Assembly (NCBI GenBank): GCA_010909165.1
Contig: MU008189.1
Location: 186,001 to 250,000 of the forward strand
Length of the DNA stretch: 64,000 nucleotides
Origin: Anthoceros angustus
Lineage: Eukaryota > Plantae > Anthocerotophyta
Direction: 5' to 3'
Of this stretch, positions 11,343-39,500 are shown in pieces. Numbering within the stretch: position 1 is the first letter of the stretch; each line of letters opens with the position of its first letter. A program made the translations under genes and the position numbers. The notes below the pieces were generated by a model. The model was given only the letters and a program-made list of their open reading frames with translations. It was not told the origin of the DNA and did not search any database.

Positions 11343-11349
11343 TATAAAA
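11343..11349 (+). promoter_or_regulatory. TATA-like box upstream of the LTR-internal ORF
   Basis: TATAAAA, conserved at 37274-37280 in the 3' LTR. Function is inferred. Confidence 0.35.
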
Positions 11350-14750: not shown

Positions 14751-14998
14751 AAGATGCCACTTGGGAAGACTTTTCTTTAGAGGAGGACAGCATTAATGCT
14801 TGTCACCAAAGAGAGTGTGTTGACTAGCTAGATAGGAATGTTGACAGAGCCATTAAGGCTCACATAGGTGAATTTGCTAGAATAGAATTTTACCCAAGAT
14901 GCTTGGATGTCGAACTTAAAGTCCGACAATAGGATACACTAAAATAAGGAGTAAGGCTGGAGGGCGCGCTGTGGGGAGGCTGTATGTGAGGACCTCCC

Positions 14999-15005
14999 TA
15001 TAAAA
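14999..15005 (+). promoter_or_regulatory. Probable LTR promoter TATA box
   Basis: cctccc-TATAAAA-ggaggg, ~860 bp before the LTR end; conserved at 41042-41048. Confidence 0.55.
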
Positions 15006-15862
15006 GGAGGGAGCTTGTGAAGTAAAATTATCGTGTCTTGCGCCCATCCTCCCGAGTCCTTCACTTTGTGTGAATTTCGTGCCGCAAGCCAACGCAGGTC
15101 CGGTAGAGAGGAGAACGCGCGGTCGGAGTGCCGGGTGGAGGGCTTGCTCTTGCAGCGCCCGCTAGCCGCCTCCTTGTGAATGGTTGTGTGAATTGTTTTG
15201 CTTTGAGTGTGTGGCGATGCTCAAGGAACTCTCGGCTTGAGGGTAGACTGCAGGAAAGACTCGGAGGTTCTCGTCTGTGCAAACCACATAGCAACCGCCC
15301 AAGGAAGAACTCGCACTTCGACGGACCCTGTGCCAGCCGTAAGGGCGAGTTGGAATTAATGAGCCAGAATTGGTGTTAGAGTAGGAGATTGTGGAGGAAG
15401 GAAGGGGTAGATGAGTAGAGAAGAAGAGGGCGTTGTTGATTGAGAGAGTTGTGAGGTGAATTAGAGTGTAGGAAAACTAAGGCCACAGCCTAAGGGACGA
15501 ATCCCAACTGCAAGTAAGAGGGCGCCCCGTGTGGAGAAGAGTGTCTTAGGAGTAGGGACGGTTGCGGTGTGGGTCGGGGTCCCTGGCGCCCGTGATAGAC
15601 ACCTTGTTAAGACGAACTGCAATTGTGTGGTGTCGTTGTAGGTTGAGGTTTGGTGAGTTTACGGCAAGACGGCGCTGTAGAGGGAGCGTGAGAGGGCGCC
15701 TTGCTTGTTTAGAAGGCTGAGGTAGTGTGTAGCTGCAGGTAGTGACGGATTTCTCAAGATTCGACTGTTTCCCAAGTCTCATGGGACGAAACCCAACGTA
15801 CGAAACGACAGTGGGATAAGTGTGGCCGCTAGAGGGTGCATCTCGGGAGGCCTCCTCCCACA

Positions 15863-15882
15863 TTTTGGCGCTGCTGCGGGAC
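15863..15882 (+). promoter_or_regulatory. Primer-binding site, Athila-type (tRNA-Asp-like)
   Basis: ttttggcgctgctgcgggac directly after the LTR-terminal CA resembles TGGCGCCGTTGCCGGGGA. Confidence 0.75.
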
Positions 15883-16139
15883 TTGAAATGAAATTTTGAG
15901 ATTTTCGCTAGCTTGCAGATGAGCCGAGAGGATCTTGTAAGGAGGTGAGCGGGGTCTAGGAAGAGGCCTACACGTCCTGGAACCTGTGCGTTGTGAAGGA
16001 GGAGCTCCACGCCTCCGAATGGTGTGATTTTTGTGTTCCCGCAGCAAGAATGGCGATGGCGGTTGGCTGATTTTTCTTTAACAACCGTGTTTTGGAGGCT
16101 ATGAGGATGCTTGCAGATGACTAGCAGGGAGGGGAGAGG

Positions 16140-18755: not shown

Positions 18756-19009
18756 GGAGTTTACCAATAAGGTCGGAGCCGACCAAAGATCGTGGCTGCA
18801 AACGGGAGGAAACATTGCCGACAAGATCTCCGGCCACGATGCATTGCTTGACCGAGAATTTGTGGTCACTTGAGACAATTGTTTATGTGAGTCCAAGATC
18901 CCGCAAAATTGTGAAGGAAGCGATTAGGGGATCCTCGAACCCATGGGGACGAAGGAGGCCGGTGGAGGTAAATGTGGTTGAACTTGTTGATTTGGGAGCG
19001 CCAGATTGA

Positions 19010-22000
19010 AATTGAGATTGCAGTGCTTGGTGCCTAATGTGCCATTAGATTCGGGTTCGAGTCAACTTGATGACGGAGGAGACAGCCATCGCCTTGGTTT
19101 CACCAAGTTTAACCCAATCCGAGTGTTCTTGAGGATGGCGATCAAACAAGGAGGAAACCTTTGGGGTGCCGAAATGTGCCAACCGTGATTGGTGGTCTCA
19201 CATTCCATCTTACCTACATTGTCATGAGGCCGGTCGATCTAGGCTACAAGGTTTTGATAGGCGTGCCTTGGTTGTATGGTACGCTTGTGTCTTTGATTTC
19301 GGCCGCAGGCATTACATTTAAGTCATGTAGGGTAGGGCCGAGGTCGCTTGTGTCATGGAGCAAGGCACCCTATGAAGGGGAGTCCGCGCTTCAATCCGAT
19401 GGGTACACCTCGGTAGTACGGGGTGAGCTCTTCTGGTGACCGAGCTACGAGGACCCCGCTTGAGGTGGCGCAATAAAATCGAGTTGGTGTACACCGCCAC
19501 AAGTAGATGGTGTCAGAGGAGGAGCCGAGGACGAGGCACATAGAGAAGGAGTAGCCTCGAAGGGTAGAGCCTATGATCGCGATTTCCGACGAAGGATCGT
19601 GAATAGTGTGTAGCAACCAAGGGACTTATGTAGATCCGACGCAGAGAGGACTTGGAGCTAGAACCCGAAGGTGGTCAAGATCTCCGCATCTAGGAGTGGT
19701 AGAAAAGAAGAATTTCAGAGGGTCCTTAGAGAATATGTCGATGTGTTTGCCTTCAAGATTATCGACATGACAGAATTCTAAGAATTGGGGATACACCGAA
19801 TCGATTTGAAGGAGGGCAGACTCGTAAGGATCAAGCAATACAGTGAATCCCAAGTATTCTATGGTCGCCAAGGATCACCGACCAATACTTGGAAGCCGGG
19901 TGATTTATCCGGCTTACCAAAGGAGTGGGTCGCCCCATTGTAATTGTACCTAAGAAGCAACAGGAAGGTACGGTGTGTCGTGATTTCGTGAAGCTTAATG
20001 AAGCAACGAAGAAGGACCACCACCTTGCCTTTCATGGCCGGGATACACTGGTCGGCCATGAAATGCAGCTTAGATGGGTACTCGGGTTACAATCGATTTT
20101 CTGAGGAGGGAGGACCAGACAAGACTACGCTCACAACCGATTGGGGCACTTACGCTTATTCCAAGCTACCTTCGCTTGTGCAACGCCTCCGCCACTTTTC
20201 AGGTGGTGAATGCTATCTTCCGAGATTTTCCGGAAGTTCATGGAGGTATTTCGGATGATTTTTGCGTGTTTGGCGGAGGAAGTCGCACCTAGACACCTAA
20301 GACAATGTTTTCGGCGGTGGAGTCCAACATGAAGCTTCATCCGTGGAAGTGTTATTTTGGCATGACGGAAGGTATTTTGTTGGCACATCGAGTTTCAAGA
20401 AGAGGATTGCGTAGATAAGGAGAAGGTGGCGATTATAGAGATGGACGACCCCAAACGGTGAGGCAGTGCCTTTGTAGGACCGGTAGGATATTACAGAGGT
20501 TCATCAAGGATTTTGCTAAGAAGGCAGCCTTGTCGACCCAATTGACCAAGAAGGATACACCTTTCGAATGGACGCACCCCAAACGGTGAGGCAGGCTTTT
20601 CAGCAAGGACAGCCCGTGAGCGCACCCACGCTACCCGCCGATTGGGAGAAACCGTTTCATGTATACGTGGATGTGTCCGCTTATGCCATTGGGACCATCT
20701 TAAGCCGAAGGACGAGAAGAAACGGACCATCCGATTTTCTATGCCAGATGACCACGGATGAGAAGAACTACTCAACCACAGAGCGAGAGGGTCTTGGTAT
20801 CATTTACTCGTAAGAAGTTTAGGCACTATCCGCTTGCTTGCAAAGTGACGCTTCATGTTGACCATTTTATGCTGAAGTACCTTGTGAACAAGCCGATTTG
20901 TCGTGAAGGATTGCCGTGGGTACTCGCTGCAAGAGTTTGATTATGACGAGAAACTAGGTTGTGGAAGCAAGATCGACGTCGATTTCATTTCTCGCCCGAA
21001 ACCGGAGAGCGACTTGAAGCCAGATGACCGATTTCGACGAGGAGTTGGTTGCCACGGCCGGGTCAAGGGGAGGACGTGAGCATGTTGTGGACGGCCTAAG
21101 GATTGATCAGCAAGCCTTGCCAGCAGAGAGGTCAAATGAGCAAGAAGGGGAGTGCAGTGAAAGGCCGCAGCAGGACAACTGGAACCGAGGGATAAAAGGG
21201 CGCCAGTATGGGCGCGAGGAGGAGGCTGGAATGCTCTCAAGGGTGAGCAGTCAGGAGGGCTGCAAGTGGAGGCCAGCCGTTGGCAAAAGAAAGAAGCGAA
21301 ACGGATATGGGAGCGTCGGTTTCAAGAAAGGCGCCCCACTTGGCGAGGTCGGGTTGTGCGCCATGGGGCCAGAGGAGAAGGCCCTAGGGAGGTAGGTGCG
21401 CCAGAGGGCGAGGAAGGAGATGCATCCCATGAAGTTTGAGCAAAACGGCAGGAGAGGAAAATGGCAGATTCATGGGAAATCACTCATGAGGTGGCCATGG
21501 GGGTGCAAACAGGCGAGGAGGTCGCCATGGGAGCACGAGCTGGACCTGGCCATGAGGCTAGACCAGCAGGAAGGGAAGAAATCCGAACGTTGTTGGAGGA
21601 GGAGCATGCAAACGGGCTGCAGGCTCAAAAACTTGCAGCATGGACAAAGCGGGGAGAAACTGGATTTGGGGATGGAACAACGCCGTCTGGGGCTGCTGGT
21701 GGGCGAGCTGGCAGGAGGCGACGAGGTATGCGTGGAAGGAGGAGATTAGAACGTGAGGGGCGTTCATGCCCAAGGTATCTGTTAAATGGTGAGGTAAAAT
21801 TTTCTAGAGCATGGAATCATGCCCGATGGTTTGTCTAGGAGGGCGAGCTGTTTTTCCACAAGACAGCCCCTTATTGCCTACGAGATGGGGTCTTGTACAA
21901 GCTTGGTCCGTATTTAAGATTCGCGATGTCCGGAAATTAGAGAAGTCGCTTTTGGTCACGTGTTTTACATGCGTAAGAGGCTGGTGGTCATTATTCACGC

Positions 22001-22105
22001 AAATCATCGTGGAAAAGGTCTTGGATGCAGGCTCGGTGGGCTACAATGCTCGGGGTCCAAATAAGTGGTATAGGCGCGAATACCTCAAGCCGCCCACACC
22101 TCCAA
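19010..22105 (+). pseudogene. pol of the outer element: protease, RT, RNase H and integrase zinc-binding N-terminus (degraded)
   Basis: PLDSGS and YKVLIGVPWL (AP); LDGYSGYN and DDF (RT); FHVYVDVSAYAIG and KVTLHVDHFMLKYLVNK (RH); AGGHYS..IIVEKVLDAG (INT). Confidence 0.8.
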
Positions 22106-22109
22106 AGAA

Positions 22110-24730
22110 CCTATGAAGAATTAAAACCGCCTGTGAAAGGTTCAGGGGCTTGACGAGGGATACGTGTTGTCCAAGCTTGAAAAGCCGCAGAGAGGAAAGA
22201 AGGAAACCTTGCAGCGATGTGGAGAGGTTTCACACCCACGCGATCAAGTGGCCTCACTGAGTTGCAGTGCAATACGGTGGTTCGCTAAAGGCCCGGGTTC
22301 TAAGATGGGGAGACACGAAGGTTACAAGCGGAGAAGAATTTGGGCAAGGCTATCAAGGCGGCGCTAAACTATGAGGAATCCAACCCGCAAGGGAGGAGGA
22401 AGGCTAAGAAGGAGAAGAAGAAGCCTGATCGAAAAAAGAAGGGATCCTCATCCTCCTAAGGAAGTTCATCGTGAAGAAAGCTCCACGTAAGATTCCACGT
22501 AAAGTTCCTGAGGAGGAAACGAGTGACAGCTGAGGAAGGCCATCGATGAGGAGCGCCAAATGGAAAAAGAAATGAAGGGTCGCACGGACAACAAGGAGTC
22601 GGGCAAGGGCAAAACAGAGGCGATGTACGCAAAGAAGGACGCGAATAAAGGAGGAGGGAGGCCGAGGTAGCACAAGAAAGTAGAACAACAGGGAACAAGA
22701 TGGAGGAGATGATGGCAAAATTCGAAATTCCATCTTAATGCGTCAAGGAACATGAGAGGCGGAGAGTCACGAACCCACGAGCCAACCTCTTCGCTCAACG
22801 TGCAGGACACTCCAAAGCTAATTGTCCGACGACAAGGGTACACCGGGATATGAGGAAGAGGAGGAAGAGGGTCCTGGAAGATACATACCGATCCGTGGAG
22901 GTTCACCAACCCAAGTGTACCCAAAAGACCATGTACCCGCCAACCCACGAATTCCACGGGTAGGCGTCAGAATCAAGGGTAACAATCCAATGGGCACCGC
23001 CTTGTGCTATAATTGTCGCAACCTTGACACTATGCATACCGCCCTTATCCAACTCCAAGGCAATGGAGATTTTGATAAACTATGTCAAGATTGTAGCAGG
23101 GCATTTGGTGAAGTGTGCTCGCCAAAGCCCCGTAAAGACGGTGAGGATCGCAGCCCACCCGAACGGGAGTTCACCAACCCAAGTCCGGTCCGCCATGCAT
23201 GTTGAGGACGCACTTATGGCGGTATGGGAGGATGCCGAGATTGGAACCCCGAGGAGCTTGGAGGGATTAGACGCAGAGGAAGCGATTATTATGGGGAAGC
23301 CTCCGCCATGGTCGTTAGAACAAGGAGCACAAAAGCAAAAGAGAGGCGACGGGGAAAAAGAAGAAAGGAGGCGGATACGACCACGGATCGATGAGGGAGA
23401 GAGTGTCGCCACCACTGGGCGGAAATACCAACACCGGAACGCTACAAAGATTTAGAAAAAACAAGTCCCGCAGTGACTTGGCGGATGGACCATATGTGCA
23501 AAAGAGTGATGCAATGAGACTTGAGTGTTCCAATGCGGAAAGGTGAATGAAGGGTCAGAGGTTGCCGAAGGGGTGGAACCCACCGATTTCAGAAAGTTAC
23601 CGAACCGAGTTAGGGTTTCCACCGACGACGGGCGAAGTCATGGATATGATACAAGAAGAATTGGCAAGGGAGGCTACGGGGAAAAGGCGGGGTGTCGATT
23701 TCCACCACCCTGTGGGAGTCCACCACCCCACCGAAGGGCCACCGCTTCAAGTCATGACGAACCGGGAACCCACACCAACCAAACTCGGATGGTAAGGTCA
23801 TGGCCACCGCTTCTTTCAATCTCGCCGAGGCCATCATGGACCAACATTTCATGATCACATTCGACAACTCCTCCGAGACAATCCGCGGTATAGGCAATGA
23901 TCGAGGGCGTTAAAAGAGGCGCAACCCAAAAGAGGCGCAATGTTCCTATACCCCCAAAGCCGCTGTGAACTTGGTATCCATGGTGGATCAAGGCCCACCA
24001 ACCTGTGGAAATTTCGGATGTGTCATCAAAGGAGTGCCTCTCGACACGGCCTGTGTAAATATTATGACAAGACACGGCTAGGAAATTGGGCTTGGATATT
24101 GAACATACTACCAAGGTTTTGAGGCTAGCCGACATGTCCGTAATGGTGCCGTGGGGAACCGACAGGGTGCTAACGACCATTGGAACCATCCCTACTTGAT
24201 GGATTATGTAGTCATCCAAAGAAAATCGCTGTGGCACGACGTCCTAATTGGCCGAACATGGATGTACGATCGCAATGCACGCCAAGTGGGGAAGGAAGTT
24301 GGTTTTAAACCGCTGGAATGGGATCCCAAGACCAAGGAGGGAAGGATGTGCCTATCGTGGAGTAAGGACATGTATGCGGTGAAACTCCAATCAAATGTAA
24401 GGGTACACTCGGCAGAGGACACGTCCGGGAGATGCAAGAGGAAGATAGGTTCCTGCTCGCACACATCTCATGGTCTCGATGAGGAGCGGACTACCGCAGA
24501 GATATCCCATATACAATTAACCCGAGGGTCGTTACGGGTAACCGCCGAATGCTCCGGAAGGGGTCCGGTGATTCAACAGCAGTGGAGAAAGCCGGAGGAG
24601 GCGCCACGCAGCTCACGCCGGAGGATTTGTTTAGGGAATGGGGCATGAGAGAAGAGGAACCGGAGCCGTAAGAAGGATTCGGGTTAGCACCGCACTGCTG
24701 GAGCGCGAGTGGGTACAGGCTGATGAAGTC
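22110..24730 (+). pseudogene. Second, related gag-protease segment without its own LTR
   Basis: LSKLEKPQRGKKETLQR, ALCYNCRN, a PLDT..VNIM-like protease site and MDYVVIQ...DVLIGRTWMY. Confidence 0.6.
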
Positions 24731-25318
24731 TGTCGTGGCACCAGACTTGTTTTACAAGAATATATATAGTAGCCTAGAGGTAGGCTGGCTATATATGTGA
24801 TTTTGGCCATTAGGAAATAGCTATTAATTAGCTTACCCCATATGAAGCTATTTAACTGACATTATCAGGATAGGTTATTAGGCCATTTAGGTCATTTCTA
24901 GAACCAGGGCTGCAAACCCGGCAGGTGGCTCGTGGGCTACATCATGAAGCCCGCTGCTGCAACGGCCAAAGGATCACGCGAGGTGGTGGCCTCATCACAC
25001 CGAGAGGGAGGTGCTTGCTCATGATGGCGGCCAAGACCTCAAGACTGGCGATGGCAGCTGCAACAACCAGTTGTCAAAGTCCGTGGAAAGGGAATGTTGC
25101 TGAGACTCACGCAAAACCGCGGTGTTGCTGGATTTCTGATTGGAATGCAAGGTTTTGGTGTGCATGTGGCTCAGAACGATTGCAATGTGTGTGGGTGCTG
25201 CGGCAGGTCACGGATTTACCAACTCCAGGCAGCCCGTGTAGGGCAGCCCTTTTGATTCGTATTTGCACCGAGGTGCGCCATAGCACACGTGAGCGCTGTT
25301 GGCTTGTCTACTTCGACA
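24731..25318 (+). repeat. Terminal repeat A1 of the DNMT element
   Basis: Near-identical to 35541-36106; bounded by TGTCG...CGACA. Confidence 0.88.
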
Positions 25319-25465
25319 ACTGCTTTCAATTGCTGGAGCTCACGTGTGAGGCGAGTGAGCTGGTGGAGGCGGTCGTGCAACTCTAGCAAGGCAGCATCCC
25401 CCACACGCCCTGATTGTGCAGCAGAAGCAGCTGCATTTCATCTGCAGCAAGCTGCCCAAGTCTTC

Positions 25466-25834
25466 CAGCGTTCATAGCGATCGCTCCACAGGTCGGTTGC
25501 CGTCGATTTGCATACCAGAGTGTTTGCCTTGTTGAGACGAATCTGTTGGTATCATTTTTGTCTACTTTTGAGTGCAATCCAGGGACTGAATGCCTTGGAG
25601 AGGTTGAGCACTTAGGGTTCAGGTGTGGAAATTGGCTATTTGCAGCCATCAGCGTTCATAGCGATCTCTCCACAAGTCGGTTTCCGCCGATTTGCATACC
25701 AAAGTGTTCGCCTTGTTGAGACAAATCTGTTGGTACCATTTTTGTCTACTTCCGAGTGCAATCCAAGGACTGAATGCCTTGGAAAGGTTGGGCACTTAGG
25801 GTTCAGTTGGGGAAATTGGCTATTTGCAGCCATC
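25466..25834. repeat. 2 x ~184-bp tandem repeat in the leader of the DNMT element
   Basis: cagcgttcatagcgatc...gctatttgcagccatca starts at 25466 and at 25650. Confidence 0.85.
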
Positions 25835-26419
25835 ACTTCCCTTGTTGCAGCATAGGTGCTAGGATAGTGATATTCCAGGTCCCTTTGCTTACTGAGGAGA
25901 AGGATCAGAGTTGCAGCGTTGGTGTGTTCAGGAATTTTGCGTTTCACATTGATTCTGTGGCTGGGGTTTTGCTTTCTCGGAGGCTGCCTTGCAGCACTTG
26001 CTTACCTTGCTGGTGGCTGATCTCTGGTGTGCTGTCTACATGGGCAATGCCCTCTGACGAGGAGGGAGGTAGTCCACGCCATCGACTGAGGACAAGGGAC
26101 GTGCCAGCCAGGGTCTTTGCAAGGAGGAGGCGGCCAGCACAACGGCAACGGCTGTCTCTAGGAGGAGACCCAGCGGGAGCAGATCCTGGTGCTGAGCAGC
26201 TACAACCTGCAGGCACAAGTTGGTCCCTTTGCTAACCAGGCCCCGATCCAGTTGCACCAGATTTTGGTGACTTGAGGCAGGATAGTGGAGGCCAAGGTGC
26301 TGACCATTCATTGGTGATTTCAACAGCACAAGGAGGACAGACTAAAGCTGACCTCTCGGAGGGATCTGATACCATGGAGTCAGGGCCATCAAGTAGGCAC
26401 GAAAAATTCTCAGGCAGGC

Positions 26420-27599
26420 CTGGGACTATGTCTTTGAGAGATTTCCGCCTACGTGTGAGTGAGGCAATCAGCCGGGTGAAGTTCAAGCACGCTGCGTTGT
26501 ACAATCACCTGTACATGTTCGAACAGCTGTCTGCCTACATGGCTGATGAGGCATTGGATTTGTACGAGGCTCACCAAGCAGATTTGACTGCCACGGTGCA
26601 GACCTTGAATCCTTTGCACCAGGGGCGCTGCAGCTAGCCTACAATGCCAAGTTGCAGGCCGCCATTACAGCTCATCAACAGGCCATTGCTAATGGCACTG
26701 TTGCTGCCACCGTGCAGCCTCCTACAGTGGTGAGCCCCTCACCCCAGCGGAGAGGACAACAGCAACGCAGGGGATTGATGAGTTCATCCAGACTCCCAAG
26801 CATGCCAACCCCGTGGAGGAGTTTCTGAAGATTCTGGAAAAGGCCTTCCCCTCAAAACTCCGGAGAAAATCGCTGAGTTGGCTACTTTTGCGAGGAAGAA
26901 AGGGAGACAGTCCAGATGTGCTTCCGTAGGCTGCAAAAGCTACGTGAGGGTACTGGCATGTTGACGGATCAGGAGGCAGCGGAGAAATTCTTAGTTGCCC
27001 TGGAGGGTGATTCTCTTTTCACTTCCAGCTTGTGTCCTCCTTGGTGGACAAATATGGTGATAACTACACCTTGGAGCAAGTGCATGAAGAGGCGGAGAAG
27101 AAGGAGATCGCCACCGGTGTTCTCCTCCAAGCATGCCAAGTCCTTCCATCACTACCAGTCCATGTTCACCAACAAGGGGTCAACCACGCATGGGGAGCTT
27201 CCTCAAGGGCAGGGCCAGCTAAGCCAGCCAAGGCAGGGCAGCAGCTACTACAGCAGCAGCAGCACCGCGCAGCCTTATGCAATTACTGTGGCAGTCCAGA
27301 GCACTTGTCCACTGCATGCAAGTGTCCATCGGAGGGTTTGTTCTGCACTCACTGCCAGAAGAACGGCCATGTTGTCACGGTCTGCTTCCAGAAACATCCG
27401 GAGACGGTATCAGAAGGCAAAGGCAGAGGTTGGTGGGACAGCAGTGGCACCTACAGCTGCTGCAGCTGGAACAGCAGGGCCTTCACGGAGCAAACAGCAA
27501 CGTGACAAGGCCAAGGCCAAGAATACTGCCAATGCTGAGAAGGTCGCAACCTTGGAGGCACAACTGGCAGCATTGGCCACGCAGGTGGCCAATCTCTAG
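26420..27599 (+). pseudogene. gag of the DNMT element (frameshifted in this sequence)
   Basis: Two CCHC knuckles, CNYCGSPEHLSTAC and CTHCQKNGHVVTVC. Confidence 0.8.
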
Positions 27600-28319
27600 T
27601 GCTGAAGGAGCCAAACCGGCTGCAGCAGTAGAACTTGTTGCAGTACCTGAAGGAGAGGACTACGGCCTGCCACATCAGGTCTGCACAGCGGATAAGGCAC
27701 CAAGTGACAGCCAAGAGGGACGTGTTGTGATGCCGACCAGCTGGGTGGGGCATGTGCTCCCAAATACCACGCTGGACATTACATCAGCAGCTACTGGACC
27801 TGTCACTAGGCAACGAGGGGCGAGGGCAGTGATGCCTCAATCCTATGTGCCATTGCCGCCAGGTTCTGCCATTCCGATCAGGGGGCAGAGCCATTCTTCA
27901 TCCAGGTCAGAGCCAAGTGGATCAGCCCCTCAAAGGGGGCAGGGCATATCACGTGCGGAAAAATTGTACTTGCTTCCACAGGCTGTCACTGCTGAACAGG
28001 TGGCTAAGAGGCTCACGGAGATCCCACTCTTCACTCTCCAGGAGCTTGAGTTACACCCAGCCGGCTGCAGCAAATGATGCAGACACTAGAAGTTGTGGCC
28101 ACATGCAATGAGCCCGATCCTGTGGTTGCTCATGCCCGATTGTGGGAACTCCCACCAGACAGATCGTCACGCTGTGACAGCAGCCTTCAGCCCATGGAGC
28201 AGCCACGAATGCATTCCGGCTTGCTGGAAGGAGTCTGCAGTGTACAGGTGGCAGGCCAAGTTGGTGACAGACCACGAGTGCAGCCACCAACAGGCTCAAC
28301 ACCGGGTTAGCAACGCTGT

Positions 28320-28640
28320 TGTTGATAATCGAGCAGGGCACGTGACAGTGAATGGTTACGCACCCAGGGTGGTGCTGCTTGACACAGGTGCACAGCCAGT
28401 CATAATCGGCAAGGTGCTGGCAGCCAGGTTGCATCTGAAGGGTGATGCTCTTCGCACATCACCCTGGAACATCAGGACTGCTTCCAGGGCAATTGAGCCA
28501 GTGTGTGGGAAACCATCCGACCGGTGGATATTACCCTTAACCCGGCACGCCAGATGAGATGACCTTGTCATTGCCCTGTCTTGTGACCACAGCCACCAAC
28601 TACGATGTCTTGTTGGGTCAAGAATTTTGTACCCACCAGG
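28320..28640 (+). pseudogene. Retropepsin aspartic protease domain
   Basis: VTVNGYAPRVVLLDTGAQPVIIG followed by a YDVLLG-type motif. Confidence 0.85.
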
Positions 28641-29058
28641 CATTGGCGTGGACAACTGGACGGAACAAGCCTTTACAGGCCTGATTGGAGACAAGGGGCT
28701 CCGTGTGGCGCATCTGCCACTGGACCTTCATGGTAAAACAGTTGCTGATGTGGCCTCGCTTGTAGCCTGCCAAATGGTTTGTGACATTCAGTCTTGCAAC
28801 CTTGGCGAGCTAGTGAGGGACACTGCCCATGTAGAACGGCAGCTGGAGTCTGCAGCTGATGAGGACTCACCTGGCAGTGGCAGCACTTTGTCTCAAGCCA
28901 TGGCTCATCCAGACTACCCTGCTGAGGTGGCCGCACGTTTGCAGAATGCCAAGGCTCAATTGCAACGTGTCCAGAGCCTTGTGGCTACAGGGTTGGCGCA
29001 TCCCACACAGGACAAGCTGCTGAACTGCACTGTGATCACGTGGGCACCTCTCAGCCTG

Positions 29059-30010
29059 AACTAACGGTGGTAGAGCTATTTGGGGTATCTGCACTGGCCT
29101 GGAGGCTTTGCTATTGACGGGCTCACTATCCGCGCTATGTCTATTGTGACAAGGACCCAATAGCCAGGGACATTGCAGCCTTCAGACTGCTTGGGCTGCA
29201 ACAGCGCTTTCACAGCAACTACCCCCAGAGGCCACTCACAGCGTTTTACGGCCTGGCCACAGGATGTGCAGTACATCCAACAGGCCCACATCCATGCTTT
29301 GGGACCTGTGGACATGGTCATCGCTGGCTGGGAATGCCAGGGGTTTTCCAGGGCAGGCCGTGGCCAAGGCTTAGAAGATGCACGTTCAGGCCTCTTTCGG
29401 GACTTGCACCAGGTGCTCGCATGGGCTCAGCAAGATAATCCACGCTGTGCTTATCTCTTGGAAAACACACCTGCCCAGCTGGACTCACGCCCACATGTGC
29501 AACAGGACATGGTGATTGTGCAGCATTATGTGGGCTCCCATTCCTTATGGATGCTGCCCAGGTGGGTAGCTATGCCCACAGGCTACGCAATTATTGGACA
29601 AACCTTGTCCCTCTTTCGGTTCAGCTAGCCTTACGTGGCACCACCAGGGATCCCCACTTGCAGCTGCAGCTGGTCTTGGAACCACATCATCAGCCCAAGC
29701 CAGTCACTGCTAGTGAGCGTGCACCTTGGTTCCCTACCAATGTGCCAGGGCAGCCGAGACAGACGTTGCCCACGCCGTGAGTTTTCCAGGCTCTTTTGCA
29801 TACAGAGCTCAAGGCAATGGCATGCTCCTTAACACTACCACTCAGCAATGGGAGGAACCTGGAGTAGAGGAGCGAGAGCCTGATGGGTTTTCCAACAGGC
29901 TCTACAGCAGCACCTCAAGTCACTCGACCCCAGCGTGCTGCAGCCATAGGCAGAGCCATGGACCTTCACGCCATTACTTGGCTGGTCAGCCTCTGCCTCG
30001 CCTTTCAATT
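29059..30010 (+). pseudogene. C5-cytosine methyltransferase domain, DNMT3-like, copy 1 (frameshifted)
   Basis: Motif I ELF(G)G, IV IAGWECQGFSRAG, VI LLENT, VIII DAAQVGSYAHRLRNYWTNL, IX/X MGFPTG...AIGRAMD. Confidence 0.88.
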
Positions 30011-31008
30011 GCACGCCAAGTTTGCAGCTGTAGCCCTTCCTAGCTTGCTGGCCAGTATGTGCCCAGCAGATGCTGTCCATTTTCCCTTTCCTGGCTACAC
30101 TCACCTACCCTTTTGGCCAGATGCTGGGGGTGGAGCAGCCTACATGGGGAAACAGGTCTGCTTTTTCCGCATCTGACCACAAGGGAAGTGAGCATGGAGC
30201 ATCAACAAAGGTCACAGCTGATAATTTCCCTTGGAAGATGGGGATGAGCTCACAGACCTGCAGAAGCAGAGGATTCACGTGCTACTGCTGAAGTATCGAG
30301 ACTGCTTCGCCTTCTCAATGAAGGAGCTGAAGAGGTGTAATGTGTTGACCTTTAGGATCAACCTTACCACCTCGGAGCCCATCTACAGGAGAAGGTACCG
30401 CCTCAGCAAGACAGAATGGGACATGGTGGACGCCCGCTGCAGGGAATTGCTGGAAGCAGGGTTGATCAGGCCCTCCAGCAGTGACTATGCTGCTGCCACC
30501 GTGATGCCGCCAAGAAGGACAGCCAAGGGCTGTGGACTGAGAAGAGGATGCGGGACTATCGTCCCATAAATGTAGCAACAGCACAGGATCGGTACCCGAT
30601 GCCGACCCCTGAAGAAATTTTTGACCGCATTGGGCAGTCAGTCTTCTTCTCCACACTTGACCTACGCCAAGGATTCAACCAGGTGCCAGTTGCTGATGTG
30701 GCCTCGCTTGTAGCCTGCCAAATGGTTTGTGACATTCAGTCTTGCAACCTTGGCGAGCTAGTGAGGACACTGCCCATGTAGAACGGCAGCTGGAGTCTGC
30801 AGCTGATGAGGACTCACCTGGCAGTGGCAGCACTTTGTCTCAAGCCATGGCTCATCCAGACTACCCTGCTGAGGTGGCCGCACGTTTGCAGAATGCCAAG
30901 GCTCAATTGCAACGTGTCCAGAGCCTTGTGGCTACAGGGTTGGCGCATCCCACACAGGACAAGCTGCTGAACTGCACTGTGATCACGTGGGCACCCTCTC
31001 AGCCTGAA

Positions 31009-31965
31009 CTAACGGTGGTAGAGCTATTTGGGGGTATCTGCATTGGGCTGGAGGCTTTGCTATTGACGGGGCTCACTATCCGGCGCTATGTCTATTGTGA
31101 CAAGGACCCAATAGCCAGGGACATTGCAGCCTTCAGACTGCTTGGGCTGCAACAGCGCTTTCCACAGCAACTACCCCCAGAGGCCACTCACAGCGTTTTA
31201 CGGCCTGGCCACAGGATGTGCAGTACATCCAACAGGCCCACATCCATGCTTTGGGACCTGTGGACATGGTCATCGCTGGCTGGGAATGCCAGGGGTTTTC
31301 CAGGGCAGGCCGTGGCCAAGGCTTAGAAGATGCACGTTCAGGCCTCTTTCGGGACTTGCACCAGGTGCTCGCATGGGCTCAGCAAGATAATCCACGCTGT
31401 GCTTATCTCTTGGAAAACACACCTGCCCAGCTGGACTCACGCCCACATGTGCAACAGGACATGGTGATTGTGCAGCATTATGTGGGCTCCCATTCCTTAT
31501 GGATGCTGCCCAGGTGGGTAGCTATGCCCACAGGCTACGCAATTATTGGACAAACCTTGTCCCTCTTTCGTGCGGAGCTAGCCTTACGTGGCACCACCAG
31601 GGATCCCCACTTGCAGCTGCAGCTGGTCTTGGAACCACATCATCAGCCCAAGCCAGTCACTGCTAGTGAGCGTGCACCTTGGTTCCCTACCAATGTGCCA
31701 GGGCAGCCGAGACAGACGTTGCCCACGCCGTGAGTTTTCCAGGCTCTTTTGCATACAGAGCTCAAGGCAATGGCATGCTCCTTAACACTACCACTCAGCA
31801 ATGGGAGGAACCTGGAGTAGAGGAGCGAGAGCGCCTGATGGGTTTCAAACAGGCTCTACAGCAGCACCTCAAGTCACTCGACCCCAGCGTGCTGCAGCCA
31901 TAGGCAGAGCCATGGACCTTCACGCCATTACTTGGCTGGTCAGCCTCTGCCTCGCCTTTCAATTG
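31009..31965 (+). pseudogene. C5-cytosine methyltransferase domain, DNMT3-like, copy 2 (fewer frameshifts)
   Basis: LTVVELFGGICIGLEAL, YVYCDKDP, IAGWECQGFS, AYLLENT, ERERLMGF, AIGRAMDLHAI. Confidence 0.9.
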
Positions 31966-32199
31966 CACGCCAAGTTTGCAGCTGTAGCCCTTCCTAGCTT
32001 GCTGGCCAGTATGTGCCCAGCAGATGCTGTCCATTTTCCTTTCCTGGCTACACTCACCTACCCTTTTGGCCAGATGCTGGGGGTGGAGCAGCCTACATGG
32101 GGAAACAGGTCTGCTTTTTCCGCATCTGACCACAAGGGAAGTGAGCATGGAGCATCAACAAAGGTCACAGCTGATAATTTCCCTTGGAAGATGGGGATG

Positions 32200-33520
32200 A
32201 GCTCACAGACCTGCAGAAGCAGAGGATTCACGTGCTACTGCTGAAGTATCGAGACTGCCTTCTCAATGAAGGAGCTGAAGAGGTGTAATGTGTTGACCTT
32301 TAGGATCAACCTTACCACCTCGGAGCCCATCTACAGGAGAAGGTACCGTCTCAGCAAGACAGAATGGGACATGGTGGACGCCCGCTGCAGGGAATTGCTG
32401 GAAGCAGGGTTGATCAGGCCCTCCAGCAGTGACTATGCTGCTGCCACCGTGATGCCGCCAAGAAGGACAGCCAAGGGCTGTGGACTGAGAAGAGGATGCG
32501 GGACTATCGTCCCATAAATGTAGCAACAGCACAGGATCGGTACCCGATGCGACCCCTGAAGAAATTTTTGACCGCATTGGGCAGTCAGTCTTCTTCTCCA
32601 CACTTGACCTACGCCAAGGATTCAACCAGGTGCGGTTGCTGAGGAGGACATCAAGAAGACTGCCTTCCATGGATCTCAGCAGCTGTGGGAGTGGCTGGTG
32701 ATGCCTTTTGGATTTAAAATGCACCAGTCACCTTCCAGAGGATAATGGATCTTGTGCTGGCAGGTGCAGCATATTTGATGTGCTACATTGACGATGTCCT
32801 TGTGCACAGCGAGGATTTTGAGCAGCACTTGGCACATCTAGAGGATCTGTTCCTTAGGTTGCGGAAGGCTGAGCTCACGTGCCACCCTCCAAATGTGAGT
32901 TTGGGATGAGCACTGTAGCATACTTGGGACACAAGATCGTGCCCAATGGAGTCATGCCTCATGCAGCCAAGATCCAGGCCATTCAGCGGGTGAAGGAGCC
33001 CACCAATGTGTCAGCACTACGGGCATTTCTAGGATTGTGCAACTATTACAGGGTGTACATCCAGAATTTCAGCAGGATTGCTAAACCGCTGAACAACCTA
33101 TTGCGCAAGGACGTGGAGTGGCTGTGGGATGAGCATGCTCAACAGTCTTTTGACACCTTGAAAGAGCGGCTCAGCACATCACCCATTATGGCTCGTCCCA
33201 ATTTTGACAAGCCGTTTGTGCTATACAGACTGGAGTAGTCTGGGGCTGGGTGCTGTACTTGCGCAAGAGGATGAGCAGGGAAGGAACGTGTGATTGCCTT
33301 TGCCTCACGCAGCAACAACCGTGCTGAGGCCAATTACAGCAGCTATGAGGGCGAATGCCTCGCCGCTGTTTGGGCAGTCTGCCACTTCAGACCTTACCTC
33401 TATGGGCAGCAGTTTACCCTTGTCACTGACCATCAACCCTTGAAGTGGCTGATGACAAACACAAAGCTCAGCGGAAACTTGCTCGCTGGGCCATGATTTT
33501 GCAGGATTACAACTTCCATG
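32200..33520 (+). pseudogene. RT and RNase H of the DNMT element
   Basis: EAGLIRPSSSDYAA, STLDLRQGFNQ, YIDDV, YLGHKI, FLGLCNYYR, NYSSYEGECLA, FTLVTDHQPLKWL. Confidence 0.92.
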
Positions 33521-33899
33521 TGGAGCACAGGCCGGGGTGTCACATCAGAATGCGGACACCCTCTCCAGGAATCCGGATAGCAGCTGTAGGGATGCCACGG
33601 AGGCTAGGCAGGATGAGGATGATCAGCCACGAGGACAGGCAGATTTTGCTGTAGCTGCCTTGGTGGCCATGACATGCCTTGGACAGCTTGAGGTTGCAGC
33701 AGCTCAACATGTCCCCAAGGACATATGGGAGGACGTGCATACAATTCAGTTTGTGCAAACTGGCCAGCTAGGTGAAGATTGGACAGCAGCAGAATGTGAG
33801 CGGTACAGCAACGTGCTGCTGCCTACTACTGGAGAGATGGGTACCTCATCCGGAGGCAGGCCCATGGTGTGGAGCAGCTGGTTCCACCTCCCGGAGATC

Positions 33900-34900
33900 G
33901 TGCTGATCTCATTCAAGAGTACATGATGACATGGGGCATTTTGGAGTCAAGAGGACCTACAGCTTGCTGGCCCCTCACTTCCACTGGTTTGGCATGCATG
34001 CACAAGTCCGGGAATGTGTCGCTTGCTGTGAGCCATGTGACCGTCAAAACATCCTTCACTATGCAGCACCCAGAGCTGCACCCACTCCCCATCATGGGGC
34101 TCTTCTTCAGGTGGTCCTGCGACCTCAGGAGAGCTGCCCAAGACACCAAGGGGTAACGTGTACATCTTGGTGATGATAGAGCACTTTAGCAAGTGGGTGG
34201 AGGCCGTGGCGTTGCCTGACAAGTCATCCAGGAGCACGTCACAGGCTTTCTTGCAGAACGTGCTGAGCCGCTTTGGCAGTTGCGCGGAGTGTCTCACCGA
34301 CCAAGGTTCAGAATTCCGAGGGGAATTCCAAGACATGTTGGATGTGGCACTAATTGACCACAGGAGGACCAGCAGGGACCACCCTCAGGCCGACGGGTTG
34401 GCTGAGAGGATGGTTCAAACCATCAAAAAGGGCCTTCGCAAGCTCTGTCTGCAGCAGCCGAAGGGGGATTGGGACATCATGCTGCCTTATATATTGATGG
34501 GGTACCGAATGAGCCGACACGCTTCCCTAGCTCATTTCTCACCCTATTTCCTTCTTTTTGGCAGGGAGCCTGTTCCACCTAGCTCCATCGCTAAACAGAT
34601 GCAGGCCGTGGTCTCGATGGATGATCCAGCCACTTGGGCTAGGATGATAGGTGACAGGGCTGCCCTTTTCCGTCGAGTGATGCCGATGGCTATGGAAAAT
34701 TTGCACATTGCACAGCATCGGGACACACTAAGGTACGCCCACACTCGCAGCGGGAGCTTCAGGCCCAAGCTTAAGAAATTCCAGGCTGGGGATTTTGTGT
34801 ATCTTCAACGCCAAACAGCTGACACTCTTGAGACTTCCAGCAGCAGACATGTGCTTAGGATCAGGAGGTCAAGTCCAATGGAGTGTTGGTGCTGCAGGAT
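33900..34900 (+). pseudogene. DDE integrase of the DNMT element
   Basis: GHFGVKRTY...WFGM...CEPC (zinc finger), WSCDL, HFSKWVEAVAL, LTDQGSEF, HPQADGLAERMVQTIK. Confidence 0.93.
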
Positions 34901-35008
34901 CTGATGGCAGGGTCATTTCTGATCACACCAAAATTGTGCCCGTGCCATCTCCCTAACCTTGACCCCACCATTGTAACAGCTGATTGGATCCCGCCAGCGG
35001 ATTACCCA

Positions 35009-35141
35009 TGCCAGATCTGCAGCCGCACGGATGACGAGAGCTCATGCTGCTTTGTGATGGATGCAATGGGGGTTCCACCTTTTCTGCTTGCAGCCACCTT
35101 TGGCTGAGGTTCCTGAGCAACTTTGGTATTGTTCAAAGTGT
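35009..35141 (+). other. PHD finger at the C-terminus of pol
   Basis: [45 protein letters not shown], a C4HC3 pattern read across about two frameshifts. Confidence 0.85.
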
Positions 35142-35430
35142 GCTGAAACTGCTACTCAGGTGTGACTGTTTCAATTCGTTTTCAGTTGTGAAGATGGATG
35201 TGATTGCATTGCAAGGTTTCATGGCTGCTAGTCACAATTGGGTTCATGTGGCATCTGCCATTCTACGTGTGACAGGTGCTATGGCCCCATAGCGTTGCAA
35301 TCGTGCTTGAGCATGGCTGTGATGCTGATGCTGTTTGGGGTTTCCTTATTCTTTCCTTCCAGGTGCTGGATAATTCCAGTTCTCCTTCTTCGCCATGCTG
35401 CCTTTCTTCTAGCCCGTCCATCAGCTGGGG

Positions 35431-36229
35431 GTGTGGCATGGACAGAATTTCCTTTTTTCTTGTTGCAGCTGAAGGTCGGGCCGGACTGGAGCGGGATGCA
35501 CGTACCTTGTGTGCCCAACAGCCGGTGATGCACATACGGCTGTCGTGGCACCAGACTTGTTTCACAAGAATATATATAGTAGCCTAGAGGTAGGCTGGCT
35601 ATATATGTGATTTTGGCCATTAGGAAATAGCTATTAATTAGCTTACCCCATATGAAGCTATTTAACTGACATTATCAGGATAGGTTATTAGGCCATTTAG
35701 GTCATTTCTAGAACCAGGGCTGCAAACCCGGGTGGCTCGTGGGCTACATCATGAAGCCCGCTGCTGCAACGCCAAAGGATCACGCGAGGTGGTGGCCTCA
35801 TCACACCGAGAGGAGGTGCTTGCTCATGATGGCGGCCAAGACCTCAAGACTGGCGATGGCAGCTGCAACAACCAGTTGTCGAAGTCCGTGGAAAGGGAAT
35901 GTTGCTGAGACTCACGCAAAACCGCGGTGTTGCTGGATTTCTGATTGGAATGCAAGGTTTGGTGTGCATGTGGCTCGAACGATTGCAATGTGTGTGGGTG
36001 CTGCAGCAGGTCACGGATTTACCAACTCCAGGCAGCCCGTGTAGGGCAGCCCTTTGATTCAGATTACGAGGTGCGCCACAGACATGTGAGCGCTGCTGGC
36101 TTGTCTTGTGTGGCATGGACAGAATTTCCTTTTTGCCCTGTTTTCTTGTTGTAGCTGAAGGTCGGGCCGGACTGGAGCGCGGGATGCACGTACCTTGTGT
36201 GCCCAACAGCCGGTGATGCACGCACGACA
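35431..36229 (+). repeat. 3' terminal repeat block B1-A2-B2
   Basis: B (gtgtggcatggacag...gatgcac.(t/c)acg.c) occurs on both sides of A2 and is absent from the 5' end; a G5 run precedes B1. Confidence 0.88.
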
Positions 36230-36539
36230 AGATGCTTTAGAAGAAACTCAGCGAATTCAGGAGCTTAGAAAGGATAGGCATGATGGGAAGTTGAGGAAGC
36301 AGGAAGCTATCATGGCCGGGGATTTGGTTCTTCAATATGATAGCCGTTATATGGACTTCCCGGGGAAGCTTAGATTGAGATGGATGGGACCTTATGAGGT
36401 GGTGGCAATGTATGAGAATGGATCCGTGCAACTACGTGTGCTGGATGGGGATTTGCTACCAACTAGAGTGAATGGGTGGGAGGCTAAGAAGTACCTTCAG
36501 CTTGAGGTATCTGTTGTTTGCGAGGACGCAAACAGGTGA
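36230..36539 (+). pseudogene. Integrase C-terminus of the outer element
   Basis: DALEETQRIQELRKDRHD...GDLVLQYDSR...GKLRLRWMGPY...VNGW. Confidence 0.85.
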
Positions 36540-36550: not shown

Positions 36551-39500
36551 TGTGGAACGCAAAAGTTTGGGCAACTAGCTTAAATGAGTTCGCTTTGAAC
36601 AGCCCACACTCTTTGCTAGAATGGTTTGGTGAAGACATGCAAGGAAATTTTTGCTCCTTTTGAGCGGAGTTGTAGGACCATGTCGGAAGGCGAGAGGATA
36701 TGCAGGAAAAGAAACGGGTCAAAACGACCTGCTGGTGAGGAGAAAAGGTAACCTACATGAGTGGTAGGAGGTGTCCTACCACCGTAGGAGAAACTCCTAC
36801 CATGGTAGACGAGGGTAGGAGAGATCCTACCACCGTAGGAGGATGACCCTGCTAGTGTTTTGATCACCTACCAGTGTAGGAATAGCTCCTACCATGGTAG
36901 GAGAGGGTAGGAAGGTATCCTACCGCCGTAGGAGAAACTCCTACCGTGGTAGGAGAAAAGGGAAAACGCCTACCATGGTAGGAGGATGTCCTACCACGGT
37001 AGGAGATAGGTTTCTAAGGAAGGTAGCTTATGTTTTAGGCAGGATAGGCTTGCTATATATAGAGTCTTTTAGTGGACTAGATAAATAGGCCAAAATAGGT
37101 AATTAAGAAATTAGAGGCTAATTTTCAGTAATTAGAAATTAGAAAAATAGGGGAAAATGGTATTTTAGTATAAGGAAATTAGGAAACTAACATCAATGGT
37201 GGGAAGGGGCCACGTGGCACACATCCAAGGGCAGGATAGAATGGTAGTTACTTTTTCTAACCCTTGGGTGACTTATAAAAGTGGTGCAGTGCAGGAGGCC
37301 ACAACTCGTAAACTTGAAGAGACGGCCTCACAGAAGGCGCCGCCACACCTCAAGCTGCCCAAGGCCCCATACAGCAACGCCAAAGGATCACGCGAGGTGG
37401 TGGCCTCATCACACCGAGAGGAGGAGAAGGAGGGCGCAAGCTCAGCAAGGAGGCGAAATCCAGCGCCCAAGAGAGGAAGAAGGAGGAAAAGAGAAGAAGA
37501 GAAGGGAGAAGAAGGTTGGGGCGCAACCCAACACTTGCCAAGCTCGTGAGGGTGCCTAGGAGGGTGGAGCGTGGCAAGATTGCTAGGAAACCGTGCAGGA
37601 AGGGCTCCTAAATTGCTGTGGCAGGTGTAAGAGTCCGTGGGGGAATTTTGGTGAGCTTTCTCTTGCAGGAGAAATCGGGGTTTCTGGAGACGCCAAGGTG
37701 TAAGGGCTGAGGAAGGAGAGCAAGGCCAAGTACCTTTGAGCTGTGAGCAAGAGCAAATCGCTGAGGAGGAGGAGAAACGTTTGCAAGGATAAGAAGCTGG
37801 CAGGAGCTGCAGGAATTGCAGGAGAGGCATCACTTTTCTTCAATTTCGTGCAAGTACTAACCAAGGAGGCCATGACCAAGCCTACCATGACCAAGGGCAA
37901 GGAGGTAGTAGCCAAGGAAGGAGCGTCCACCAAGGGAGGTGGCGCAGGAGCTGCAAGAGGTCTAAGGCGGAGGATCGACCGGAGGGTGGAAATTTGACAT
38001 GCCCTTGTTTACGTGCTATGCAGGCCAGCTATCCTCTAGAGACCTTTCGACTTTCGACCTTGGGCAGAGGAGAATATTCAGCTAGAGTGGGTGTATGGGC
38101 GACATTGGTCTTACACCAACCTTGAATTGATAGAGAGTGTTTTGCTAATTTGCAGCAGACGGAAGAGGAATTGGCCGCCTTACCGGATAGAAACGACGGA
38201 CGGATCCACGGTGTTGGACGTAAGGAGCATACGCTGTATATGGCAGCGGATAGCGAGGATAGCGGAATCACGCTGATGGAAGGAACGAGTGAGGCAAGCG
38301 TGCATCAACGGCGGATCTTCCCAAGGGAGCCCTTACACTTATGCAAGGGGCATGAAGGCTAAGTCCAAGAATGGTTGGCGGACGACCAAATCTTGGAGCC
38401 CAAGTGGAGATTGTTCACAAGAATTGTTTTGGGCTTGGTGAGCAATCCAAGGGTGTCATATTTCAGCACTACCTTCCTCCATTTTCTATGGAAGATCACT
38501 CAAGGAGCGAAGCCGGATTGGGGGCTCATCATGTATGAAGCATACACCTACCACCGGGAGAAGTTGCTGAAACCCAACGCGTCGGATGAAGACAGTCCAA
38601 GGCCGTGCTATCTTAGCACTTATCTAGTGCATTTGTGGGAAGTAGAGGGGCTACTCACAAGTAAGGAGTTGGATGATTCCAAGCATCCCTTTAACATTGT
38701 GTACTTACAGCCAGGAGAGGGACAGGGAGTGCTTGGTGCTTTGCAGCTAAAGGAGGTGCCGGCAGCACCACCTGGGACATTATTGCTGGAAGGAATCCCT
38801 CCGAAAGATAGGCCAGAGGATGTGCAGGAGGACTTGCAAGGAGAAGTTGTAGGGGGATTTGAAGTTTGGACCGCGGAGGATGCGGAGATGGAAGGTAGGA
38901 TAGATCCTACCATGGCGGTGAATCCCGCGAGGGTGGGAGGTGTTCCCACGGTTTGGGACCCCTTCGTCCTCTCATGACAAGGCCTACGGTGGCAGAATTA
39001 GTCCTACCACGGTAGGGAAGTAGTCCTACCATGGTAGGAGCACCTCCTACCACGGTAGGAGGAAAGGAAGTCACGGTTTGGAAGCTCCCAAGCGGGAGAT
39101 AAGAAGGCAACCGGCCCTGCTAGGTGGGCGAGCGGATGGAGTCACGGTGGGAGGAGTTGCCCACCAAGTGATGAGCGGGAGCTCATCATAGGGAAGCAAG
39201 GGATGTAAGATCCCATGAGCAAGGCAAAGGCCTTGAGTCTCCGGAGGTAAGAAAGGAGACTTAGACATGTTGGAGGAGATGCTGCGCAGGGGAGATGTTC
39301 AAGAAGGTAGATGTAGGAGCCGCCAAGAGGAGAGTTGAATTCTTGAAGACGGAGGCGGAGAAGACAAGGACCTACCAAGCAAGGGAAATTGCGGTAGGCG
39401 GCGGAAACCCAGCGGTGGAGGATGTTATGAGGATGGAAGCTCAAGTGGAGCACTTGGAAAAGAGTCTTGAAACAAGGCACAGGAGGCAAACAATCATATT

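Follow-up and report, generated by a model that had tools for sequence, protein, structure and literature searches.

Introduction

Cytosine methylation is the main route by which plants silence their transposons, and a transposon that encodes the writer of this mark is therefore a paradox. That paradox has so far been studied only in dinoflagellates and in one charophyte alga, the gypsy type being without demonstrated activity. Two described systems come closest to the case considered here. In the streptophyte alga Klebsormidium nitens, the KnitGypsy-Dnmt3 elements hold intronless Dnmt3-related domains within the Pol open reading frame (ORF) of a gypsy element, and their repeats follow the DIRS layout "A-coding region-B-A-B", as in SymbioDIRS-Dnmt3 of Symbiodinium, while their domains are those of gypsy elements (de Mendoza et al. 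2018, PMC5890265). The SymbioDIRS-Dnmt3 domains methylate CG in DNA de novo (PMC5890265). Here we describe a retroelement with a DNMT3-type cytosine methyltransferase (methylase) domain in pol, found in a window of 64,000 nucleotides (the whole stretch of DNA that was analysed) from the hornwort Anthoceros angustus, contig MU008189.1 of assembly GCA_010909165.1. With a probability of roughly 75%, we read it as a fairly young copy of a multi-copy Ty3/gypsy-type, Gypsy-DNMT3 retrotransposon that resides in a land-plant nuclear genome and whose methylase has been inherited with the lineage.

Compared by its published description, KnitGypsy-Dnmt3 shares with the window element an intronless DNMT3-type domain in the Pol ORF, the A-coding-B-A-B arrangement, a multi-copy state and a streptophyte host; the window element differs in that its host is a land plant and in that it has a PHD finger after the integrase, a domain unmentioned in PMC5890265. 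SymbioDIRS-Dnmt3 likewise combines a DNMT3-type domain in pol with A-coding-B-A-B repeats, but the Symbiodinium element has a tyrosine recombinase, belongs to another reverse transcriptase (RT) lineage and acquired its methylase independently (PMC5890265). PHD fingers are already known from gypsy elements of green algae, and Chlamydomonas Gypsy-7a_cRei, likewise a gypsy element of the green lineage, has one in pol as the window element does, but its published domain list includes no methylase and the PHD finger stands before the integrase (PMC9940879).

Full-text literature searches returned retroelements bearing a DNMT only from Symbiodiniaceae, streptophyte algae, and Cymbomonas and Euglena "EpiLTRs", and none from land plants. 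What is new is a land-plant host for a known kind of element, together with a wider and largely undescribed family: beyond what has been published, two architectures, both often with a PHD finger, occur in Closterium, Monoraphidium and many metagenome assemblies.

The Methylase within Pol

The ORF listing, three-frame translation, Pfam searches and self-comparison together delimit one retroelement at 24730-36221 on the plus strand (all positions are those of the 64-kb window), with the domain order gag (CCHC), protease, C5 cytosine methyltransferase, RT, RNase H, DDE integrase and PHD finger, all on one strand. The original prediction, made from the letters alone, had drawn the element at 28320-35165; this interval lies inside the element, which is larger and also has terminal repeats, a leader and gag. 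The landmarks that it named were all recovered on the plus strand, namely the LLDTG protease, the YIDD RT and, between them, a methylase recognized by PF00145 (E 9e-7 and 4e-6, above the curated cut-off), and so were its motifs I (ELFGGI), IV (GWECQGFS), VI (ENT), VIII (DAAQVGSYAHRLRNYWTNL) and IX/X (ERERLMGF ... AIGRAMD). A single methylase had been described; its placement between protease and RT is right, but the domain is present twice, an internal duplication having been missed, and motif I is legible only in the second copy (copy B). In the same way, the "near-continuous frames" that were said to join the domains do run on the same strand, but they are broken five times within the 970-bp methylase and about once per 150-250 bp of pol. 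The copy B domain at 30994-31965 (+), matched by PF00145, accordingly reads as six frame pieces (30994-31185, 31194-31490, 31490-31570, 31578-31727, 31730-31831 and 31849-31965), which were searched singly or joined with X at the frame breaks.

Of 1.84 billion representative proteins searched with the middle piece, 99 aa long and spanning motifs IV-VI, 1012 matched at E<1e-3, with many gypsy polyproteins among them, and 75 at E<1e-10. An alignment of 25 full methylase domains drawn from these matches gave the consensus ELFGG, AGWECQG, LENV, LDAA.FGS.AHRLR.YWTNL and ERERAMG...LG.AMD. When the profile of this family alignment was compared with solved structures, DNMT3A (3e-25), DNMT3B (2e-23) and DNMT3C (8e-23) were ahead of DRM (7e-14), M.HhaI (1e-11) and DNMT2 (3e-7). 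An affinity with the HhaI type was considered and rejected: the middle piece alone had put HhaI slightly above DNMT3A, an order that the family profile clearly reversed. The fold was compared through a relative that stands in for the window's broken copy, the methylase domain of P0165, the closest intact polyprotein. Its AlphaFold model (mean predicted local distance difference test score, pLDDT, 94.4) has DNMT3A/B/C as all of its 50 best Foldseek matches in the PDB, with template modelling (TM) scores of 0.82-0.85 by target length. On the evidence of the profile and of this relative's model, the methylase is of the DNMT3 type. The DNMT3-like wording that had been remarked in motifs VIII and X can indeed be seen where the family profile is aligned with the DNMT3 structures.

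At the level of single residues, the window methylase keeps 41 of the 45 alignment columns whose conservation in the family is 90% or more, including the catalytic Cys, the Glu of ENV, the Arg-x-Arg motif and the glycines of motif I, and its motifs I, IV, VI, VIII, IX and X stand in unpermuted order. The four mismatches are one X at a frame break, two gaps where the pieces omit RLMGF, and one Ile-to-Val change; at the omitted RLMGF, G305 is kept and A303 reads Leu. Animal DNMT3A/3B/3C have the same catalytic fold (TM about 0.83 by target length, for the relative's model) and similar motifs VIII and X, and they pair the methylase with a histone-reading ADD domain where the window element pairs it with a PHD finger; unlike them, the element has no PWWP or ADD, carries a Glu for a Pro beside the catalytic Cys and about 60 extra residues, and is encoded by a parasite. 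A homologue search with the family alignment returned family fragments only, with no canonical DNMT3 or DRM, and an atlas search gave nothing beyond a generic Streptophyta-labelled PF00145 cluster.

Relatives and Descent

When all retrieved proteins were compared with the element by tblastn, P0165 (an intact polyprotein of 2358 aa) and P0163 ranked first and were collinear with 27125-35156, that is, from gag to the C-terminal PHD finger. A maximum-likelihood tree of 104 methylase domains separates two clades, each with 100% support in the SH-like approximate likelihood ratio test (SH-aLRT). The nearest neighbour of the window methylase is P0182 (98% support; 56% identity), located on L005, an 8.4-kb metagenome contig whose gene order is that of the window element. 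The clade of these two also includes P0163 to P0165, the P0021 group (P0021 itself reads CCHC - protease - methylase - RT - RNase H - integrase) and the Closterium proteins P0019 and P0091, and the methylase lies upstream of RT in 16/16 of its proteins that have an RT. In the other clade, which includes Monoraphidium, the order is mostly RT - RNase H - methylase - integrase, and P0073 adds a PHD finger after the integrase. Tree and domain order together indicate that the methylase is an inherited pol module of the element lineage, not a one-off capture, and that it belongs to a subclade with the domain between protease and RT, inside a large clade of green and streptophyte-algal retroelements marked by AGWECQG.

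The polyproteins of Closterium and of metagenomes (P0165, P0163, P0182/L005 and P0021) thus share with the window element the order from gag to integrase, the methylase clade and the AGWECQG hallmark, and P0165 and L005 share the PHD finger as well; they differ from it in sequence, their methylases being only 36-56% identical to that of the window, their RT and integrase 45-63%. The second, green-algal architecture (Monoraphidium MNEG_11595 and P0073) has the DNMT3-like domain, the hallmark, the gypsy backbone and the PHD finger in common with it, but places the methylase between RNase H and integrase and falls in the sister methylase clade.

How the lineage came to be in a hornwort can be read in more than one way. 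A horizontal origin, with a green alga, a streptophyte alga or some other donor as the source, would account for the fact that no such element has been reported in any other land plant in the literature searched, for nearest relatives that sit in metagenome assemblies at 45-63% protein identity, and for named relatives that are algae, Closterium and Monoraphidium. Vertical persistence, however, predicts what the tree shows, a methylase clade that holds Closterium (the Zygnematophyceae are reported to be the algal sisters of land plants). In addition, no near-identical algal sequence was found among the search matches, and P0004 and P0005, which are 50-55% identical and come from one other sequencing project, suggest long residence. 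We regard horizontal transfer as unlikely, albeit the most serious of the alternatives to be weighed here.

Several observations on the relatives stand apart from this argument. Over positions 1-18357 of L003, the contig that carries P0165, a unit of 8262 bp is repeated perfectly head to tail (2.2 units); behind this may be a tandem array, a circular molecule that was read round, or an error of assembly. Nothing that matches a 123-aa ORF of L003 was detected in the window, on L005 or on L002. On L004, a 5′ repeat and a 3′ repeat are followed directly by a further partial repeat, an arrangement that the window element shares. Two long metagenome proteins, P0046 and P0054, combine the C5 methylase of this family with a Dam-type adenine methylase domain and in this resemble the dual-methylase "EpiLTR" elements of a preprint (10.64898/2026.05.21.726589). 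Finally, P0004 (L001:846-2003, run SRR33208241), a fragment with nothing but a methylase of this family, has a JmjN-ARID-PHD-JmjC gene about 6 kb away and is followed by no RT; it may represent a truncated copy of the element or else a gene in its own right.

Frame Breaks and the Internal Duplication

As assembled, positions 28739-30686 (copy A, comprising the protease-methylase linker, a methylase at about 29047-30011 and the N-terminus of RT) are repeated head to tail as 30687-32633 (copy B) on the plus strand. Self-comparison puts the two at 98.7% identity, and both the methylase and the RT N-terminus are doubled. The copies differ almost solely by single-base insertions and deletions (indels), mostly in short runs of one base, a pattern that is recognizably that of long-read sequencing noise. 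The duplication (28739-32633, 1.95 kb) leads from the RT N-terminus back into the linker between protease and methylase, with CAGTTGCTGATG / CGGTTGCTGAGG as a short, imperfect stretch of homology at the join.

Positions 30400-35400 of the window were aligned with Logan contigs from four public sequencing runs (X1-X4). In run X2, one contig of 7751 nt covers 30687-35361. At their left ends, this contig and one of X1 run on into what stands just before 28739 in the window; the duplicated segment is therefore present once in each, and neither supports the 30686/30687 junction. The X2 contig has extra bases at 31195 (+1), 31488 (+1), 31570 (+2), 31728 (+1) and 31845 (+1), in part also found in other runs. 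These five sites are all five of the methylase frame breaks, and the size of each insertion fits the frame change. Further extra bases at 32037, 32256 (+5), 32632, 33222, 34041 and 34896 lie in the linker after the methylase, in RT, in RNase H and in the integrase. The methylase frame breaks are, on this comparison, almost certainly assembly errors and not a property of the family, and the duplication, if it is not an artefact of the assembly, would be confined to this copy. Since both ends of the X2 contig fall at repeat boundaries, it is uninformative on transcript ends.

Copies and Methylation Footprints

The same runs show that the element is multi-copy in two organisms. In X1, 108 contigs in several identity classes align on the 5-kb stretch (30400-35400), and X3 and X4, which come from a second organism, have 275 and 220 contigs with identities from 85 to over 99%. 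Between the X3/X4 copies and the window, C>T or G>A accounts for 61% of base differences. Among 19 listed C>T/G>A sites, a small sample in which three (32213, 32798 and 32996) were seen solely in the X2 contig, 6 are in CG and 8 in CHG context, against a background of 11% CG and 25% CHG. Methylation of hornwort transposons has been reported at CG and CHG, and the CG/CHG bias fits deamination of methylated cytosines in these contexts. The observed/expected ratio of CpG is 0.38-0.42 in the element, 0.58-0.81 in the element that surrounds it and about 0.7 elsewhere in the window. Read as footprints in the sequence, these values show a lineage that lives under methylation, whoever writes the 5-methylcytosine (5mC).

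Boundaries and Remaining Domains of the Element

The terminal repeats of the element are split, in the layout A ... B-A-B, and do not form two plain long terminal repeats (LTRs). Repeat A1 (24730-25309) is 96% identical to its match A2 (35540-36106), and B1 (35431-35533) is 89% identical to B2 (36108-36221), which by self-comparison is the 3′ end of the element; all four are on the plus strand, as are the features that follow. Over 567 bp, about 8-9 substitutions separate A1 from A2, the remaining differences being 1-nt indels. Directly after A1, positions 25310-25325 are complementary to 25065-25080 within A1 (16 nt, 88%) and form a candidate primer-binding site, possibly a self-priming site that replaces a tRNA site. 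The version of this A stretch in A2 (about 35870-35885) pairs with 25310-25325 over 13 nt with zero mismatch. The untranslated leader then holds two tandem 184-bp units (25466-25835) that are 92% identical.

The gag region (26877-28074) has a CCHC zinc knuckle at about 27278-27322, for which PF00098 gives E 9e-4 and a score of 19.6 bits, just below the curated cut-off of 20.8, and it is collinear with the gag of P0165 and with L005 ORF1. A retropepsin-type aspartic protease with VLLDTGA (28342-28491, in an ORF at 28093-28557; PF13650, E 3.6e-6) precedes the methylase copies. Downstream of them lie RT (32245-33240, with YIDD in 32718-32906; PF00078, E 5e-8), collinear by tblastn with P0165, P0163 and L005, and RNase H (33162-33540; PF17917, E 3e-24 at 33275-33493, and PF17919, E 4e-15). 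The integrase (33803-34901) comprises an H2C2 zinc-binding part, which aligns with the Integrase_H2C2 regions of P0165 and P0163, a DDE core (ORF 34041-34901; PF00665, E 1e-11) and a C-terminal part, and is 50-63% identical to the integrases of P0165, P0163 and L005 ORF2. At its C-terminus a PHD finger (34862-35153) is spread over three frames and is piecewise 54-75% identical to the PHD regions of L005 ORF2 and P0165, for both of which PF00628 is recorded. The split PHD pieces, like the short methylase pieces, gave no Pfam match, and homology to intact relatives was used instead. A DIRS-like identity of the element was considered and rejected: where such elements have a tyrosine recombinase it has an rve integrase, and its pol is collinear with gypsy polyproteins throughout.

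Genomic Setting

Around the element lies a second LTR element, in which it is nested; the long LTRs of this second element start near 10635 and 36551 and are 92.8% identical (36551-37500 matching 10635-11551). This surrounding element occupies 10635-24729 and 36222 to about 41900; it has a CCHC gag at 17683-18126 and a protease-like stretch at about 24100-24500, and it resumes with a C-terminal integrase piece at 36195-36539. At the site of the DNMT element it is without RT, RNase H and integrase core, and the nesting is therefore not a simple insertion. Its LTR contains five copies of a 46-nt unit from the palindrome CCTACC..GGTAGG (36775-37014 and 39025-39070).

Two uninterrupted genes for DYW-type pentatricopeptide repeat (PPR) proteins lie on the same contig, at 54845-57385 (+) and 61453-63897 (-). 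They encode 846 and 814 aa, with KPA.A motifs and with DRH and DHH ends instead of DYW, which we take to be the PPR type associated with the U-to-C RNA editing of hornworts, lycophytes and ferns. Named relatives of both proteins are all from land plants (lycophytes, ferns, gymnosperms, liverworts and mosses) at 36-49% identity. With two intact DYW-PPR genes on it, the contig is therefore land-plant nuclear DNA. In GC content and noise the window resembles a Nanopore-based hornwort assembly, for instance one of 119 Mb and 49.6% GC (PMC7027989), which agrees with the hornwort host suggested in the original prediction.

These neighbours bear on the most deflating explanation, namely that algal or contaminant DNA entered the assembly, or that a single copy captured a host DNMT3 or DRM gene. 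The assembly is noisy and the relatives are mostly algal or metagenomic, as such an artefact would have it. Against this, the element is nested in an LTR element on the same contig as the intact DYW-PPR genes, it is present in four runs from three studies and two organisms, and its methylase bears the hallmark of the retroelement clade and groups with retroelement domains. We consider an artefact of this sort largely refuted and very improbable. Both of its forms had been foreseen in the original prediction: what had been feared to be a one-off host capture turns out to be a family trait with its own hallmark, and what might have been an algal or contaminant contig carries intact DYW-PPR genes. 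The central claim of that prediction, a Ty3/gypsy element with a DNMT3-like methylase in pol in land-plant DNA, is upheld by Pfam, by the family profile, by the relative's model, by collinearity and by the linkage to DYW-PPR genes.

Is the Methylase Active, and on What?

A number of points weigh against the reading that we prefer, that of a young gypsy copy with an inherited methylase, and against its extension to an active enzyme. There is no target-site duplication at 24729/24730 and 36221/36222. The assembled copy is full of frame breaks and has the internal duplication, and its intact form is deduced from contigs of other runs, for which different copies may be the source. The methylase tree is unrooted and was built without canonical DNMT3, DRM or DNMT1. 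The kinship, proposed at the outset, with the elements that de Mendoza et al. (2018) described from streptophyte algae is borne out by architecture, repeat layout and Closterium relatives, and the link to KnitGypsy-Dnmt3 rests on these features, no Klebsormidium protein having appeared among the named or looked-up matches. In the one published assay of this element family, the KnitGypsy-Dnmt3 domain gave no methylation in yeast, a result that its authors call inconclusive, human DNMT3B being likewise inactive there (PMC5890265). The family as a whole, finally, has Glu for Pro before the catalytic Cys (GWECQG).

Several of these points could be taken to mean that the methylase is a decayed or non-catalytic passenger kept through recent copying: the frame breaks and duplication, the Pro-to-Glu change, the inactivity of the Klebsormidium domain and, in addition, the dominance of C>T and G>A changes in the copies of the second organism. 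We know of no enzyme with a Glu-Cys motif IV that has been shown to be active. However, the Glu is conserved across the family and for that reason is not a sign of decay; in the family alignment W113 is nearly invariant and C115 and Q116 are invariant, and the conservation of AGWECQG across about 100 diverged elements indicates selection. For each methylase frame break, contigs of other runs supply extra bases, and the catalytic residues are among the conserved columns that the window copy retains. Copies from Klebsormidium, moreover, have a ratio of nonsynonymous to synonymous substitution (Ka/Ks) of <0.2 (PMC5890265). A mere passenger is, in our judgement, improbable.

It can also be envisioned that the methylase is active on something other than the element's DNA, such as RNA (genomic or primer) or, together with the PHD finger, target-site chromatin, or that it interferes with a host pathway. 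RNA methylation has been raised for retroelement DNMTs that are inactive on DNA (PMC5890265), a motif IV changed in this way could go with a change in the substrate used, and a PHD finger on the same polyprotein suggests action directed at chromatin. The fold and all DNA-methylase motifs nevertheless match DNMT3 and not DNMT2, and the related SymbioDIRS-Dnmt3 domains act on CG in DNA (PMC5890265). Another substrate seems doubtful to us, though less so than outright loss of function.

For an enzyme that works on the element's own DNA, we tentatively favour the mechanism proposed in the 2018 paper, to which we would give somewhat less than even odds. In the particle, or in the pre-integration complex, the methylase would be made alongside RT and integrase and would place 5mC, mainly at CG, on the new complementary DNA (cDNA) or on the fresh insertion. 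A new copy would in this way enter the genome already marked with the heterochromatin mark of the host and so limit its own dosage and the damage that it does, and the PHD finger would probably read histone H3 tails, steering either integration or methylation. The complete scenario, in which a Gypsy-DNMT3-PHD lineage was carried from algal ancestors into hornworts, is still active and writes 5mC on its own new DNA, asks for more and is, taken whole, distinctly unlikely.

Implications

A young, multi-copy and possibly transcribed copy in a small land-plant genome offers a setting for methylome and RNA data, and possibly for genetics. The Pro-to-Glu change at the catalytic loop, common to all members, merits biochemical attention. 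If the lineage is indeed active, a de novo methyltransferase encoded by a parasite would feed the CG/CHG methylation of hornwort transposons, and would do so in a plant that can be grown and transformed. The element may thereby permit tests, in a land plant, of why a parasite encodes its own silencing mark.

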